DNA of 63,706 bases, filler included, from Lenisia limosa (lineage: Eukaryota > Protista > Breviatea): assembly GCA_001655205.1 (NCBI GenBank). It is 13 parts of 13 records of this genome, joined end to end, with 100 filler letters (N's around TTAATTAATTAA, not from the genome) between each part and the next. Parts side by side here need not be neighbours in the genome. Positions count along the whole stretch, not along the records: positions 56,728 to 62,050 come from LPNZ01006303.1; 12 more parts are not named here. One strand, given 5' to 3'. Both the position numbers and the translations under genes were made by a program. The notes under the pieces were generated by a model, which did no database searches, was not told where the DNA came from, and worked only from the letters and a program-made list of their open reading frames with translations. Shown here one piece after another: positions 2,641 to 62,150 of this stretch. How positions within the stretch are numbered: position 1 is the stretch's first letter; the number at the start of each line of letters is the position of its first letter.

Positions 2641-4720
2641 ATCCGGGGAGTCCTCAATGCCAGCATGGATGTGCATGAGTTGGAAAAGGTTTGTCATGTC
2701 AGTCACAGCCTGAGTCAGCTCGCGATACACACTGGAAACGTAAATTATAACAATTAAACTCTATCCGTTTTTGTTATAGGTGAAACCGTAAAATGGTTTG
2801 CTCTTCCAGTGCCAAGATCCTCCACGCCAAAAATCCTCGGGGTTTTCGTCCTGCTGCCACCATCGTCACCTTATGCAACCGAGTTATGTCTATTTCTTCT
2901 TTCTTTTTACTAAATGTTAAATACAAAAAATACTGGAAATGTAAAATCTTAGGGCTTCACTACAGTAAAAAAGCATTGGCATGATATCGACAAATGTCAA
3001 GGAATCATCAGGAAACTAAGTCTATTCTTTGGCATGTTAATTCGCGATATTCACATTTATAGAAATGAGAAATAAAAAAGGTTCTATCCAGCCGAAGCCG
3101 TCCACACCATCACGCTTAAAAGAGATATTGGATTAGAGTAAAATATGAATTCACAATAATAGGAAATATCAGCCAAATGCCCCCCCTCCAAGAATTGAGA
3201 AGTTGTCAGTTAATCATATGATATCTTGGGCTTCTCCTCGGTCCCAAAAAAAGACCGAATTTCTCAATACCTCTCCGATACAAATCTATATTATACTGGT
3301 CTTTCTCGGACCCTAGGGAAGCCCCAATATCNNNNNNNNNNNNNNNNNNNNNNNNNNNNNNNNNNNNNNNNNNNNNNNNNNNNNNNNNNNNNNNNNNNNN
3401 NNNNNNNNNNNNNNNNNNNNNAAACCGTGAAACTATATAAAATAGCGTGTCAGAAACGTATACGCATGGGTTTGGCCCACAAAATTGATCTTAGCACTTC
3501 AAGTGGACTTAATTTATCTACATGTATATATATACTATATAACATATAGTATATTATTTACAGTATATTAGTATAGTTTTCAAATGAAAACACCGCTTCA
3601 GATAGTTTTACCAATTTGTAGCTTTACGCCAATATTCTTCATAGAAATTTCCTTCGTTTTACCCCCCCCCCCCCCNNNNNNNNNNNNNNNNNNNNNNNNN
3701 NNNNNNNNNNNNNNNNNNNNNNNNNNNNNNNNNNNNNNNNNNNNNNNNNNNNNNNNNNNNNNNNNNNNNNNNNNNNNNNNNNNNNNNNNGGGAATATGGG
3801 TAATTTATGTGGGAATAATGGACAATCCATGTCGGAGTAATACTTGTCAAAGAGTTGATAGAAGACAAACAAGTGTTAATAGGAGGAGAGAAATGGATGT
3901 TGCTGTGGGACCAAACTTGACACCTTGCACTTCCACCTCCGCACGTCTAACCAGGTTGGTTGCTTACAGTTAGGGCTTCACTTCAATTTTAAACAAGAAT
4001 GAATTTCTCGATAAATCCAAGAAAAATATATTATAGATATTTCACTAGTCCTTTTTTGACCGAAGTGAAGTCCTACTCACAATGGATGTCTTCCATACCT
4101 ATCACTGGTATTTGGTGGGGTTTTCAATTGGGTTGAGATGTTCGCTATACCACAGACTTGACTATTTTTTGGAGAGGCGGCGCGAAAAACTCGCAAAGAA
4201 TTGTATGTATATATGTATAGGGGCTGCCACTCCACTTGAGAAAAGATTCCAAAAAACGAGCTACTAACTGTTTTAGGTTCAAGAAATACCTTACTCGTAT
4301 CAGGAAGTATGTCAAGCCCCATCAAGTAGGATCTTACGGACCTCAGACACACAAGAGTAACCTTGGTAAGTCTTGGTTTTGTCAATCTCACCCGCTCGTA
4401 TATGGTATAATGAGCGGCATTAAGAGCAATCACGCCGACCCAGTGTTGTCCAAATTTATTGTTGAAAGAAATGAGGTGTGAATATGAAATGCTCTTTTCA
4501 AGCTTAACATGGGCTCATTAATTCAATGCTAAGAACCACAGAAATATGCTATGGGCGTGGGAGGTGGAGGAGGAATACAATAACCCAGTCTCTGGCAACC
4601 CGCAAATGAAAACCTTGAAGTCCGTAGTATCATGGAGGCAGGTATGCACGCACTTTTTTTTCTTTAAAACGTGAAGGCGTTATGAGTTGATCGTTGTTAC
4701 GCTTGACGCCTTGGATGAGA
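2641..4720 (+). CDS. Hypothetical multi-exon gene, possibly degenerate
   Basis: GC-richer exon-like blocks with GT-AG ends (about 2641-2729, 2781-2885, 3790-3955, 4278-4476, 4534-4641). No recognisable domain, and frames are not fully reconcilable. Confidence 0.3.
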
Positions 4721-6576
4721 GTAAATGACGTGGCACCATAATAAACAATTGCCACGGATCGTCAGATCGATTGTCAATGACCAACTCAAAAAGCTCGGAA
4801 CAGCTTCCATCCGTGCCCACCGAGGTCGAGGAAAGTCCATGTCCTAGTCATCCCAATGACTCTTGATGCAGGCCTCTACGTCCGTGATGAAGGAGTTCGG
4901 TACCTACAATTGCAGAAGTGACTGGGCTGTTGCTATCAATCCTCGTGTGTTGTTTGCTTTTTCTCGATTACATAAATTTCCAATTTTCCTCCTCTTTTTT
5001 TGTTGTTCATCTCGTTACGATACTCAAAGGATCTTTTGAAGAGGTGTTGGTTGAGAAGGTAATTCTTCCTAAGGGCCTCACACTGTCCCTTTTTTTTTCT
5101 TGGAAAAGGCTGTTTTGGATGGAGGGGGTAATCCATTTAGTTCTTTCTAATAGTTGTTCAATTCCCTCTTGAGGTGGTCTTCAGCTCTGTCGAGGCCCTC
5201 CCTCCTAAATAAAAAAAAAGGTGTATTTTGATCCATTTTGTGGCTTAACCCAATTGAACATGCCCTACTACTTGATGGCAAATACCGTGATTCTTGTTAA
5301 TTTTTTTTTGAAACCACCTCAAAAGAGATGAGAAACCTGATTGACAAAATACCATGATGTTTTTTCGGCTGTCATCGCCACCAAGGGGGGCGGGCCAACT
5401 TAAATACCAAAAATGTTCAGCGTTTTGATGCACTGATTTTATATAGTATTACAAGTGGTATTGTTTTTTTTTTTATTTCGTTAAAAACACATCATAACTT
5501 TTTTTACAAACAACATTTTGTGCATAAAATATAGTTCAAATTCCAAAAAATGACAAACTTTTCAGAGAATATGACCTATTTTGCGACAAGTGAAAGGAAC
5601 AACTGTTTGCCATTACTTATGTAACTCACTGTTCATATTTACTCATAAAATGTTTCCCCTGTTGCTCTTCTACGACCTTAACCATCTCAACCACAGCCAG
5701 GCATCTTCCTTCCCCATCTTCGTCAGTAATGGTGTCATCTTCGCTCTCGTTTATGCTAGACATATCCAACGCTCTGCCCGTCTATATTGAAGTTCATTGC
5801 CAAACTCAACGGTCACTGCAGTATGAAGAGGACTCGTACAGCCATAATATTTCGCTAATTCCGTTTCCAGAGCCAGCTGCTAATGAATATTCAGGTTCGA
5901 CAAGCCTTGAACAAGGAGCAGCAGGCCAGATCTAGTGGAGTAACACGACTTGTAGCGTCAGTTGTAGCTGACGTTACCTATTCACAAACCGACACCTTCC
6001 CATTCTTCCAAGCAGTGTTAGAAATGAGTCACTCAATAGTTGATCTGTTGATCGAATGGCGGTCCTTGACAGTACGAAAAACTACTCCCAACTCCTTCTG
6101 GCTTATTTTGCGTATTGTGCAGGTGCTGCGCTTTAATATATGACCGTTGTAAGTTATCATTTCTGGATTGTGACCTGATGATGATCAGTTAAAGCTTATG
6201 TCCAGTTTCCCTCACCCGGCTGGTCTATGTTTTGAGAGGCCGGCTTGTGGGCGATATTGATTTCCCAATATATTGAGCGACATGACCCGGTAACGGTCAT
6301 TTCGACTCACTTTTATAATAGCAAAGAAAACATATCATATCAATAGGAATGATACATATTCCACACTATTGTATTTACCACTTATCTACTTAAATATTCT
6401 ACCCGGTAGTATTTGTCATTCTTAGCAAAAACGATTATTATATTGGAAATCATAAATCTGAGCATTATTTCTAATACCCCCCCCCCACCNNNNNNNNNNN
6501 NNNNNNNNNNNNNNNNNNNNNNNNNNNNNNNNNNNNNNNNNNNNNNNNNNNNNNNNNNNNNNNNNNNNNNNNNNNN

Positions 6577-56310: not shown

Positions 56311-56767
56311 AATGGGCTTCGTCCCCAAAAGAGACCGAAATTATATCATAGCATATACTAACTGTTATACCTGAGGCTTCACTTCGGTGGAAAATATCGA
56401 TAGTTTTCGAGGATTTATCGAGAGAGTGTTTTTTTTCGAACCGAAGTGAAGGCCTAGTTATTCCCTTGTCGTCTTTGACATGGATGTCTGCGACTGGAAT
56501 AAGTCTTGACCGAATTACCTTGGGGAACACCAGAGCAAATCGATCAAGAGTTATCCCGGTCACTGTATTTTTATATATATATATATATGATATAGATACT
56601 AAACTGTTACAGCCCCCCCCCCCCCAANNNNNNNNNNNNNNNNNNNNNNNNNNNNNNNNNNNNNNNNNNNNTTAATTAATTAANNNNNNNNNNNNNNNNN
56701 NNNNNNNNNNNNNNNNNNNNNNNNNNNAAACGCAAGATCTTCGGGACTCAAGTCCATTTCTTCGGCT

Positions 56768-58385
56768 TCAATGGTGTCTTTCAAACGTTTGATTCCTGCT
56801 GTGAAAGTGCCTGTGCGAACGCAATATTTCCTTCCGCCTTGAGCTGCTGGGTCTCGATGGTAATGTGAACTTTACCCAGAAGTGAGCATTCCAACATTTT
56901 GGGCCAAGCAGGGGTACGGTGATACACATTTGGTGACATTCATGTTCACCTCTGTGAACAAGTGCGTGAGGTAGGGCCTGTTTGGAAGGGTAGCCATCCG
57001 TGGGCAAGGGTCTGAAAGTTGTGCCCTTTTCATAGACACTGGGGTCGATCAGCAGAGGGTTGTAGTCATCGACGGTGTAGCCACAGGACTGAAGTAATGC
57101 TCGAATCACCGCATGTGTTGGCTCGCGGAGAGCTTTTGCAGCAATCTCGGTAAGCTCAGTAGAGGTCATGGTCCTTTGAAAATGAATTATATTAATTGGA
57201 TATATGACTACAAAAACTAGTATGGAACATTATTGTATCAATATAATGCCAAGGTCACCATTAAATAATCATTAGGAGATGTACATGGGACAATTAATGG
57301 ATGTTAGTAATAATTAATAGTGAATGGGATAAAATCAACCGACATACTTGTTAGGAAAATATTTGCAATAGGTGGCGATCTGGCTTCTGATTGATGCATT
57401 AACCTTGGCGTGGTGGAATGAATCCCCAACCTAAAGTACAATGACTAGAGTTATATAGAAATTGGGAATTTTCACAAAACTGACCTGCATGAAGTGGGAA
57501 GTGAAAGCAGGTTCAATCACAAGTATTATTTTATACAAGAGGAAGACAGCCGCAGACACCTAAATAGTAAAAATGAAGAGCAAAAATCATTCAAAGAATG
57601 CAGGTTTGACATTACAAAAACTAATAGCAAGACCCATCATACATCAGCAGAGACATGAACCCTGGCCCCATCAAGCACAACAACGAGAGGGTTTGTCAAA
57701 GTGGATTCCATTCTTTGGTGTAGACGTTCGAATGTCAGCATGATAGCCTCAGAATTGAAGAAAACGCTAGAATTCACTCCAAAAAGTCTCATAACATGCT
57801 TTCGAGCAGCGTTTTGAGCGACAGGACTGGATTCTTCCATTCTGAGTGTCTCTTCAGGTGAGTATTTATTTAACCATTTCACAATCTTATCAATTTTTCT
57901 GATCCAGTATCCGACCTTTGGTCTCCCATCTTCTTTTCTTCTTTCTTCTCCTTGGCAGCAGCCTGTGAAGCTGCAACTTTGTAGATCTGCTCTCCTCCAA
58001 TCATGATAGAAGACTCCATCAGCTGTCCTTCCAATGTACTCAGAGTTAAAGCAGAGGCCATTGGATCACCCTTGACTCCCCCCCAATATGACTTCATCCA
58101 TGCAATTTCGTCGCCGAAAAGTATCCGACTTGGGGGTACGGGGTGCTGTGGGGTAAATTGTTTGAGCAAGCTGATGGCGACTTCAATATTCTTGTATCCT
58201 TTTTTCGAGTCCTTTTCTTCAATATGCTACGTTGTCAAAAGACAATGTTTAAAATAATGTGAATAATCAAGAAAAAAACTCACCTTTTTACACTGATTTC
58301 TAAGCAATTTGTACGTTTTACCAAGGATTTTCACTTTATTAAGGCGTTTGAGAGGTATGTTTCTTTGGTGGAAGCTTCTGTAAAA
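56768..58385 (-). pseudogene. pogo/Tigger-like (DDE_1) transposase-derived gene with introns and at least one frameshift
   Basis: RILFGDEIAW (first D) ...TLSTLEGQLMESSIMIGG... VVVLDGARVH (second D) ...IEPAFTSHFMQ/VGDSFHHAKV (PxxTSHxxQxxD) ...AVIRALLQSCGY. A frameshift lies near 57930-57960. Confidence 0.75.
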
Positions 58386-58714
58386 TCCGGGAAAACAAAT
58401 GGTCGCTTTGATTTAATTGATTAGAAAAACGAAAGAAAAGGGATTCTAAAAGAAACAAGAAAAGTTATGGATGTTGCAAAAGGATTGAAAAAGGTTTTGA
58501 ATCTTGCTCTGTGATAGTTTACTCTTTAGCATGGTATGAAAACTCATGTTTCCCTATTGGTAAGAGAATTGAAGAAAAGTGACAAAGATGGAAGAGGAAG
58601 TGCGACCATTGTGAGACAACAGCTGAAGGACCTTGTTGAATCTTCAAATTTAGACCGAAACCGTCAAATGGCTACCTAAGTATGCTTCATTTTTGATATT
58701 TACCCAATTTTTAG

Positions 58715-59440
58715 CCTGAGAATTGTATTCCTTGTGCAAGAACTTGGAATTCTGGAAATAGACTGATGCGATCAATACTATTTCACGTGGAACAGATGAA
58801 AACAGCGGACATCACAAAGAAAAACAAGGAAGCAGGTCGTCGTTATATGGTTGAAATGACAAAAGAGGCCATTATTTTGAGAATCCTAAATATCTACCGA
58901 AATTTGGCCGATAATCAGCTTGAGCTTGGTAAGTAAAAGTGTCTCTCACTATTTCCAGCAAAATCAGCATTTGATACCTCAATTGACTCGCTTTATACTA
59001 CTTTCATCACCACTGCCAATCGGGAGCTTAGATTTAAGCCATCTTTTGAGACTGCCTTAAAAGAGGTTAGATCTATTTTTTTGCAATAATAATCATCATA
59101 TTTTCAGCTTTTAAACAAACCTTTGAATGCAGTTCAGGCAAATAAACTTATCAAACAATCTGTCGACCGTTTATCTGAGTCAGTTCCTGATTTCGTCATT
59201 GATAATAACAAGGTAACAATGTTCGACGAAATTGCTTTTATGTCTGGTAAATGGGAAGGTGTCAGGAATAAACCCCTAGTGTCAGAAGTATCCATTTCTT
59301 CTATGACAGGTCAAGTTGTCAGTTCCCCCATTATCATCGGAGGAGATTACTGCCTCTCAAACAAAAAGAGGATACGTTTCAGAAGAAGTTTTGAGTTATG
59401 ATCTGATCTATGATTCACATCACTATTCTGTTCGATGAAA
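58715..59440 (+). pseudogene. Second, diverged and truncated paralog of the same DDE-like protein
   Basis: TMFDEIAFMSGKWEGVRNKPLVSEVSISSMTGQVVSSPIIIGGD aligns without gaps to LFGDEIAWMKSYWGGVKGDPMASALTLSTLEGQLMESSIMIGGE of the minus-strand copy. The frame closes at 59401. Confidence 0.7.
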
Positions 59441-59717
59441 ATGTGATGAAGACTCCTCCAAACCTTCTTGAAATAAATTCAGTTCACCTATGAGCAAAAA
59501 GAGGTTAAAGTACAAATTTTTGACTTTCGCTCGACTCTCTTGCACTTTATATACTTAATATTTTAATATAGCATCAAAAACATATCCATCCTGTTTCCGA
59601 ACCGATTTATTACATTTCCTTCGTAGCAACCCCACTTTCAAATCCCCCCGGGGGTAGGGGGTGAACCACCCCTGGTACTTGGAATCTTGGAATCCAGCAT
59701 TCAGCCTCGATCGAAGA

Positions 59718-60817
59718 ATGTCTCAAGGTCAAGATATTAATAAAATCATTGACAAGCTTCTATCAGTGAGAAGGTTTTTTTTTCAGTTTCACCTGTACTC
59801 GAACGTCGAAATATGTTGATTTATTGGAGTCTGATATTAGATTTTTGTGTATACGTGCAAGAGAAATTTTTGTGAGTCAACCTGTTCTCTTGGAACTGGA
59901 AGCTCCTATTAAAATTGTTGGTTTTTTTTATAAAAATTTGAATTAGGTGATATCCATGGGCAATACCTCGATTTATTAAGGCTTTTTGAGTATGGTGGCT
60001 ATCCCCCCTTTGCAAATTATCTATTCCTTGGAGATTATGTCGATAGAGGAGTTAATAGTTTGGACACGATTTGCCTCCTTCTAGCTTATAAAGTGTTTTC
60101 TTTTTGTTAATTTGATCAAATTTCCTGAAAATTTTTTTATGTTACGTGGAAATCATGAATGCTCAGCAGTGAGTAGAATATATGGTTTCTATGAAGAATG
60201 CAGGAGACGCTATAATGCAAAATTATGGAAAACATTTGCTGATTTATTTAATTGTTTACCTTTTGCTGCAATTATTGATGACAAGGTGTGGTTTAATCGT
60301 TTTTGACAATAGATCTTTTGCATTCATGGAGGTCTTTCTCCTGACTTAAAGTCAATGGAACAATTGAGAAGGATTATGAGGCCAACCGATGTTCCTGACG
60401 CTGGACTAATTTGTGATTTATTATGGAGCGATCCTGACCCTGATGTGACTGGATGGGGAGAGAATGACAGAGGAGTATGAGTCTTCTTTTTTTATTTTGG
60501 TTTCATTTACCTTTGGAGAAGATGTTGTCTCCAGGTTTTTGGAAAGACATGATTTCGATTTGCTTTGTCGTGCACACCAAGTGGTTGAAGATGGGTACGA
60601 GTTCTTTGCAAAAAGACAATGTGTGACTTTATTCTCTGCACCCAATTATTGTAATGAGTTTGATAACGCTGGGGCAATGATGACGGTGGATGAAACTCTG
60701 ATGTGCTCTTTTCAAATATTAAAACCTGCTTTGAAGAAACTCAAGTTTAATTCTGGGACAGTGTCTTCCTTGAGACCAGCTACCCCTCCAAGAACCAAGA
60801 AAAAGAAATCAAGGTAG
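59718..60817 (+). CDS. PPP1C: Serine/threonine protein phosphatase 1 catalytic subunit, complete, 6 exons
   Basis: [117 protein letters not shown]. Introns at 59774-59795, 59921-59946, 60093-60114, 60286-60312 and 60475-60499. Confidence 0.97.
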
Positions 60818-62150
60818 TTAGGAATGTATTGACGATTTGTCTTGTGCAAACTAAGTGAATATCTTAATAATCATTCCCCTACTGTGCCCCCCTCCTTTTC
60901 TACTGTATGGACCGATAGTTACACATGCACAGTTTTCACGTGGCTCAAACGTGGTGACTGCCCTAGGAATATTCTAACGAATAGGGACAAAAGATGTTAA
61001 AAATGAATTTCAAAATAAACCAATAAAGCCGGAGTCCACGCGAAAACAATGTTTTGGAATTTCGCCCAGGGGTGACGGTCATTGTATAAACCCCCCAGGT
61101 GGCGGTATAATGACCATTTTTATGCTCTTATTATCTCTTTTTACTACGTCGAGGACTTCACGGTTTTAAATATGTGTTTTAAAGTAGTCTATAGCAGCCC
61201 AAACTTAATTAAAAAAAGAGAAAAGTTGTAGGAAGTTAACCGTATTTTTCTGACATTGTGTTAAAACACAGAAGACTAAGAAATGACGAAGGTTGGTGTT
61301 CTTTGGATTGTTTAAGTTTATATATAACAATTATCAGGAAGGATGGCGAGGGAGAGGCCTTTTGATACTTGCGAAGTGCTGTTTACGAACTCCATTGTCT
61401 TAAGGTGTGCCTTCTGCCCTTCTTATTAACATATCTTATTGTATTAATAACTATCAATTGCAAAAATGGGAACTTTGGAATATGTACCGGACTTCCTCTT
61501 CAGCATTACACTTTTCTCTCCCCTGATCAGTGCATTCTCTCACTCGCAACCGTATGGCAATTGATTCCCAATTCTTCCAGTACCTGTTTAATTGTCTTTA
61601 AATGTTTATTTATTATGCTTTATTTAATTTTGTAGCCACATATTTATGTCGTAGTTTATCAAAGTGTTGCTCTTGTACTGACTTATTTACCATTGGTGGA
61701 AACATAATTGAACAGCAAATCCAGCAAACAACAAAATGATGATTCTTTGAGTCTTCTAGTTTGTTGTTTCTTCTATGTCAGCGTTGGTTTATTTTTTAAA
61801 AAAGCATGTCCATTTGCCCATTAAGTTGCCCTTTTCTCCATCTTGAGGTTGTCATCCTGAGCGACTACCGAAGATGCATCAAGGGGAAGATGTACATAGG
61901 TAGGTTGTCTTTTGGGAGGTGACAAAGAACCAAACCCTGAAGAAACGGAGGTCAACGAGGCAAGTGTCTACCTCAGTGCCTACACCTCGCGACCGTAACA
62001 AGGTCATGAAGGGGATTGTTGGTTCGTGATTAGGTTATTTTTTGTTTGTTNNNNNNNNNNNNNNNNNNNNNNNNNNNNNNNNNNNNNNNNNNNNTTAATT
62101 AATTAANNNNNNNNNNNNNNNNNNNNNNNNNNNNNNNNNNNNNNNNNNNN

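Follow-up and report, generated by a model that had tools for sequence, protein, structure and literature searches.

Evidence for GT-TG micro-introns in an intact, expressed gene for the PP1 catalytic subunit

Background

The dinucleotide AG at the end of introns that begin with GT is among the most invariant signals of eukaryotic gene expression. A gene for the PP1 catalytic subunit, found in the window (the whole stretch of DNA that was analysed, 63,706 nucleotides), raises the question of whether TG can take the place of this signal. A sequence-only reading had proposed that the coding sequence of this gene needs three micro-introns running from GT to TG, and that a spliceosome which tolerates TG sets the 3' site largely by distance. 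Two public runs from one 2016 study bear on the question: X1, which is DNA by its behavior, and X2, which is poly(A)-selected RNA.

Results and discussion

The PP1 gene and its product

The PP1 gene lies on the + strand at 59718..60817, from an ATG at 59718 to a TAG at 60815-60817, and is the one conserved gene of the piece covering positions 56728-62050. Read straight through, it runs into a frame break or a stop at five places. Only after five segments had been taken out was an ORF of 978 nt (325 aa) obtained, giving six exons separated by five micro-introns and a product colinear with PP1 without gaps. Re-reading of the sequence returned the coordinates and sequences of the five introns as first claimed. 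The companion claim, that the gene is otherwise intact and aligns to canonical PP1 without gaps, was borne out by comparison with 57 near-full-length PP1 genes fetched from metagenomes: 20 independent ones aligned with 0 gaps over 315-322 residues, at identities of 74-78%. Exon 4 by itself (57 aa) matched residues 107-163 of human PP1-gamma, gapless and colinear (E = 8e-30).

The motifs GDIHG, GDYVDRG, GNHE, HGG, RAHQ and SAPNYC are all intact, as is a TPPR site at the C-terminus, and the tail bearing this site is of the animal/fungal type. The product thus displays the marks of PPP phosphatases (GDxHG, GDxVDRG and GNHE) along with full-length colinearity to PP1, and it shares all metal-binding and catalytic motifs with the PP1 family (human PP1 alpha/gamma, PDB 1u32 and 3e7a). 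It differs from known PP1s by reading SAPNYCNEF where SAPNYCGEF is usual. The best relative in a set of 5.8 billion proteins was 81% identical, and identities of no more than about 74-80% to the PP1s found suggest a fast-evolving lineage.

Three PP1 matches from ENA were considered as relatives and rejected, being fungal-type genes with GT..AG introns of 60-120 nt. Among 80 PP1 loci from JGI metagenomes no relative with tiny introns was found, and these loci served as colinearity controls; an exact 42-mer across PP1 intron 3 had no match in the JGI metagenomes. Two of the JGI loci, L032 and L056, come from unrelated eukaryotes and carry a canonical GT..AG intron where PP1 has its intron 2, in the same phase, the site falling within the Gly codon of GDIHG. 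The position of intron 2 is therefore old, and what is unusual here is confined to size and end signals.

Five micro-introns, three of which end in TG

All five introns lie on the + strand and begin with GT, as U2-type introns do, but the U2-type AG is missing from the 3' end of introns 1, 3 and 5. Intron 1 (59774-59795, 22 nt, GTTTTTTTTTCAGTTTCACCTG) reads GT..TG, or GG..CT given one base of boundary ambiguity. Intron 3 (60093-60114, 22 nt, GTGTTTTCTTTTTGTTAATTTG) reads GT..TG and has no boundary ambiguity at all, while for intron 5 (60475-60499, 25 nt, GTATGAGTCTTCTTTTTTTATTTTG) an ambiguity of two bases allows GT..TG, TA..GG or AT..GT. Taking GT as the common 5' end, introns 1, 3 and 5 all end in TG. 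The other two, intron 2 (59921-59946, 26 nt) and intron 4 (60286-60312, 27 nt), are GT..AG.

The internal dinucleotides are informative as well. As had been noted from the sequence, intron 3 contains no AG and yields an in-frame TAA upon retention, and intron 5 yields an in-frame TGA and has its sole AG at nt 6-7, unused; both descriptions were confirmed. In intron 1 the AG at nt 12-13, whose use would give a 13-nt intron, is also passed over, and introns 2 and 4 both leave a TG at nt 19-20 unused. Downstream of the TG acceptors the nearest AG lies at +34 nt (intron 1), +52 nt (intron 3) and +19 nt (intron 5), so that these sites are not TG-AG tandems.

Splicing in poly(A) RNA

Run X2 contains a spliced contig of 931 nt corresponding to 59762..60814 on the + strand, with a depth of about 1208 and 0 mismatches to the exons. 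After left-normalisation its deletions coincide exactly with the modelled introns 2-5: it lacks 26 nt at 59920 and 27 nt at 60284 (the same deletions as introns 2 and 4, left-normalised), 22 nt at 60093 and 25 nt at 60475. Its 11 unaligned 5' letters, ATCAGTGAGAA, equal 59762-59772, the end of exon 1, are unique in the piece, and are joined to 59795/59796. In the dominant RNA, intron 1 therefore loses 22 nt and not 13, in agreement with the choice made from sequence against the 13-nt AG alternative; support for this intron is weaker than for the other four, as it is bridged by 11 letters on one side only.

X2 depth falls to zero in the repeats on either side, although these have 3-14 times the DNA depth of PP1, so that the PP1 signal in X2 is RNA and not DNA carry-over. 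The junctions are supported by one RNA contig from one run, and contigs conceal minor isoforms; TG use is thus shown to be dominant, though not necessarily exclusive. Within this scope, transcripts retaining the segments or using other acceptors, which would have spoken against the proposal, are replaced in the assembled dominant form by one from which the segments are exactly removed. The human type of TG usage, as a minor alternative site close to a competing AG, does not describe this gene either, the assembled dominant form being the TG one.

The PP1 contig of X2 ends at 60814, one base short of the TAG, and no RNA contig was found on 60822-61177, about 360 nt past PP1. The 3' UTR may be almost absent, the poly(A) being added at the stop codon or beside it; otherwise the transcript end was left unassembled. 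The break at 60814 also led to a sixth intron starting there being considered; it was rejected, its putative next exon having no RNA contig.

The same locus in DNA

In X1, one contig of 1660 nt covers 59439-61098 with 0 differences from the window and retains all five segments. These coordinates delimit a single-copy island around PP1 (59439..61098), with a depth of 41.8 in the DNA run, between repeats whose depth is 100-570 on both sides. The five segments of 22-27 nt are thus kept in DNA and missing from poly(A) RNA, where the exons are joined in frame, as expected of U2-type introns. The claims that PP1 needs three GT-TG micro-introns and that the spliceosome tolerates TG are borne out by this comparison, the RNA contig being deeply covered and the DNA run holding no intron-less copy. 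An unexpressed pseudogene standing beside an all-AG paralog, which would have counted against those claims, is excluded for the window copy by the perfect identity of the RNA contig to the window exons and the single-copy state of the locus.

Removal at the DNA level would produce the same RNA: the transcript could come from a version of the gene without the segments, either a processed retrocopy or a somatic genome from which they had been removed in the IES-like manner of ciliates. In size the segments resemble the sequences that ciliates eliminate, and the RNA contig by itself cannot separate splicing from a shortened template. However, the DNA run holds the retained form only, at single-copy depth, and no X1 contig carries any of the five deletions. 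Two canonical GT..AG segments go along with the TG ones, and all five start with GT. Ciliate eliminated sequences are lost from somatic DNA and bounded by TA; here the DNA keeps the segments, and their ends are G..G instead of the TA..TA known from ciliates. The 325 PP1 codons contain no in-frame TAA or TAG, a further point against this origin, which is considered very unlikely.

It could also be asked whether the real acceptors are AG, three T's having been miscalled in sequencing or assembly. The TG bases agree in the window, the Logan contig of X1 and L001, a contig of an ENA metagenome assembly (sample ERZ3820729) that is 99.93% identical to the window, its two differences (59228 and 61401) both lying outside PP1. 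The three assemblies were probably built from the same reads, so that their concordance is not independent proof of the T's, and this leaves some room for a shared error. An error would nevertheless have to be the same A-to-T change three times over, exactly at position -2 and at a depth of 41.8, and two to three introns of a neighbouring gene (see below) are alike. Such a coincidence is very unlikely. The five segments are best explained as genuine pre-mRNA introns of an intact, single-copy and strongly expressed PP1 gene, most likely removed by a U2-like spliceosome whose choice of 3' site, elsewhere bound to AG, admits 'A or U, then G'.

A second gene with similar introns

Contig L001 reaches about 3 kb beyond the piece and holds a NEK6/7-like kinase gene on its + strand (L001:4063-4709). 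The junctions of this gene were set by homology only, from colinearity with kinase motifs and with NEK7 (the exon ending in RVMHR against NEK7 119-160), and all five of its introns are readable with a 5' GT. The first (L001 4100-4121, 22 nt) may be GT..GG or GG..TG. The second (4250-4273, 24 nt) reads GT..TG, interrupts LLQ/SLSHPNI and passes over an AG at nt 18-19. The third (4356-4381, 26 nt) reads GT..AG, with a 32-nt alternative equally in frame; the fourth (4520-4541, 22 nt) reads GT..TG and interrupts MHR/DLKPAN; and the fifth (4621-4641, 21 nt) reads GT..AG.

On this homology-based model, TG ends are not confined to PP1. With a second gene 3 kb downstream needing like introns, the property is probably a trait of the organism, beyond PP1 alone. 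The NEK6/7-like frame has no recognisable continuation past SPERMQ on L001, the gene being there either interrupted by a repeat or a fragment.

Pattern among twelve introns

Two further introns, both GT..AG and RNA-supported, are borne by the flanking repeats: one of 42 nt upstream (about 59066-59107) and one of 46 nt downstream (about 61292-61337). Together with the five of PP1 and the five of the NEK6/7-like gene they make up a set of 12 from about 8 kb of this genome, with a length mode of 22 nt and a composition of 53% T and 6% C. Their constant 5' signal is GT alone. No AG or TG that ends within the first 20 nt is used, and in 10 of the 12 the first G from nt 21 onward serves as the 3' end; as to the exceptions, NEK intron 1 is ambiguous and the 46-nt repeat intron violates the pattern by skipping an AAG at nt 23-25. 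All four introns of 22 nt have an A at nt 18 and a G at nt 22, and most of the others share an A-N3-G 3' end. In every intron, candidate branch A's precede the 3' G by 4-6 nt (contexts TTAAT, TTTAT and TCAC).

The proposal that distance from the 5' site largely fixes the 3' site is plausible. The skipped early AG and TG dinucleotides and the first-G pattern are consistent with it; a dozen introns make a pattern and not a proof.

Non-AG ends were found in 5-6 of the 10 introns of the two conserved genes, and this count bears on a more modest explanation, namely that TG is limited to a few introns, for instance by recent A-to-T mutations after which a ruler still finds the G, in a genome that otherwise obeys GT..AG. 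The sample is small, at 12 introns, and a survey of tiny animal introns gives AG as the 3' signal (PMC13644364). However, so high a proportion would be very unlikely at a genomic rate of about 1%, and the published logos derive from predictors and aligners restricted to GT..AG, which are blind to TG. A local oddity of this kind is regarded as unlikely.

The composition of the splice sites is also pertinent to the type of spliceosome. U12-type introns accept varied 3' terminal dinucleotides and have short branch-to-3' distances, two properties that recall the present introns. The 5' ends seen here are GTTTTT, GTGTTT and GTATGA, not RTATCCTT, and the introns hold no branch box resembling TCCTTAAC. 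Moreover, lengths of 22-25 nt are far under those known for U12 introns, and the minor type would have to account for half of the introns in two genes. Minor-spliceosome introns are for these reasons a most improbable explanation, and a major-type (U2-like) spliceosome, working in a mode ruled by intron length, would be the most likely agent.

A putative mechanism

In such a mode, a length ruler would position the 5' site, conserved only in its GT, as well as a branch adenosine some 17-18 nt further downstream. The second catalytic step would then pick the first G found at least about 4 nt beyond the branch adenosine, and any AG or TG less than about 21 nt from the 5' end would be disregarded as a consequence of the ruler. 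The contact made by the last G would be retained, with an A at -2 dispensable and a T at -2 harmless. Pairing between the last and the first G of an intron is established, as is a contact of the A at -2 with the branch A; of these two, only the pairing would still be required here.

The predicted cause is loss or divergence of the Prp18/Slu7/Prp8 fidelity module, combined with an AG-independent early recognition (U2AF35); the prediction is based on yeast without Prp18, which behaves similarly, though weakly. A wider version can be put forward only tentatively, its probability falling somewhat short of even: a new rule would hold throughout the lineage, by which, in introns of 21-27 nt, the 3' end is the first G (after A or U, perhaps G) about 4 nt past a ruler-placed branch A, itself about 18 nt from the GT, with a large share of all introns, perhaps a third to half, lacking AG, and with the second-step fidelity factors (the Prp18/Slu7 module and the reading of AG by U2AF35) lost or remodelled. 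Were the organism a parasitic animal with tiny introns, annotation limited to GT..AG would regularly break genes of this kind, adding to the low BUSCO scores and the 'intron retention' reported for such animals.

PP1, an essential gene, would here provide a natural case of TG serving as the only and dominant acceptor of most introns. Such a case would separate the contacts that the catalytic spliceosome cannot do without (the last G) from those that it can forgo (the A at -2), would make the 'molecular ruler' model of the 3' site testable in introns barely above the spliceosome footprint, and would be a natural counterpart of the yeast Prp18 fidelity mutants. Genes of this kind would be mis-annotated by standard gene predictors and spliced aligners, and gene counts and completeness scores of tiny-intron genomes could be biased as a result.

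Comparison with known systems

Other eukaryotes almost never use a TG acceptor alone, whereas the splicing machinery of the window organism routinely accepts it. A full-text survey of the literature on GT-TG introns and on non-AG sites in short introns found constitutive TG acceptors described in no tiny-intron organism.

Ciliates are among the known hosts of tiny introns, which measure 15-16 nt in Stentor and about 25 nt in Paramecium and are reported as GT..AG. Like those of the window they are constrained in length, have their branch A within a few bases of the 3' end and give stops upon retention. Ciliates, however, reassign stop codons, of which the window PP1 shows no sign.

There is a close resemblance in form to the introns of myxobolid myxozoans and of Dicyema japonicum, which are likewise 20-27 nt long with little beyond GT at the 5' end (Hadjez et al. 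2026, PMC13644364; Zverkov et al. 2019, PMC6543705; Aruga et al. 2007, PMC2222250). In T. kitauei introns are mostly 20-25 bp and GC is 37.5%; the D. japonicum genome has a GC of 36.7% and 49% repeats. The GC of 36-40% seen here, the dense repeats about a single-copy gene, the TPPR-bearing PP1 tail, the NEK6/7-like kinase and the intron mode of 22 nt would fit a fast-evolving animal such as a myxobolid, and would fit a dicyemid too, though as a guess. These introns and those of the window lack a polypyrimidine tract and have a few A's just before the 3' end, and gene content is of the animal/fungal type on both sides. In the tiny animal introns conserved A's shift away from the 3' end as length grows (PMC13644364); this growing distance from A to 3' end suggests a branch set from the 5' side, and the PP1 and NEK pattern agrees.

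Two differences stand out. The third intron base is mostly T in the window introns and A in those of myxobolids and Dicyema, and the latter are described as AG-ended whereas 3 of the 5 RNA-verified PP1 introns end in TG. For the tiny introns of myxobolids and Dicyema, AG is given as the sole 3' signal and conventional U2AF-dependent recognition was inferred (PMC13644364). TG ends would be missed in these studies, as the predictors and aligners were limited to canonical sites (PMC13644364 and the Dicyema genome paper).

In human U2-type introns TG is the commonest non-AG acceptor, reported from 36 genes and always as an alternative in close tandem with AG (Szafranski et al. 2007, PMC2374985). 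The human sites and those of PP1 are both TG acceptors of introns starting with GT. In human, however, TG is never the sole site, while in PP1, a housekeeping gene, it is the dominant site of constitutive introns, the nearest downstream AG being 19-52 nt away.

In yeast, Prp18 is described as a ruler enforcing a minimum distance from branch to 3' site, and in prp18-delta cells UG, CG, GG and branch-proximal 3' sites become usable (Roy et al. 2023, bioRxiv 10.1101/2023.01.12.523824). Yeast without Prp18 resembles the window in its non-AG acceptors, in its near-branch sites and in keeping the last G more often than the A. It is nevertheless a laboratory mutant whose isoforms of this sort are minor and mostly unproductive, with a shortest branch-to-3' distance of 7 nt, whereas in the window such sites are used naturally, dominantly and with a productive outcome, at a distance that would be about 4-5 nt.

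Flanking repeats

The flanks of PP1 within the piece (56728-59438 and 61099-62050) are multi-copy repeats in the DNA run, with many variant positions, and some are weakly transcribed. The ORFs of these repeats had no match in Pfam or databases, and a protein search with a 133-aa flank ORF returned none; a Tc1/mariner transposase identity considered for the upstream repeat was dropped, having no Pfam support. The sole match of one repeat ORF was another repeat contig, L002, from which no further conserved gene was obtained. Scanning the piece, L001 and L002 for Rfam families and tRNAs gave nothing usable, and no direct or inverted repeats of at least 20 nt were found within the piece.

Three minor observations concern these surroundings. 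Near the end of L001, at 5550-5590, lies a run of more than 30 G, likely a low-complexity tract or an assembly artefact. In the upstream repeat ORF at 58677-58715, an in-frame TAA stands at the apparent end of an exon and is followed by 35 nt of the form GTATGC...TTTTTAG, after which the frame resumes; the TAA marks either a decayed copy or a hint on stop-codon use. At 61844-61935, contigs of the DNA and RNA runs both switch strand, an 'opposite strands' joint which suggests that this repeat also occurs in an inverted arrangement at another place in the genome.
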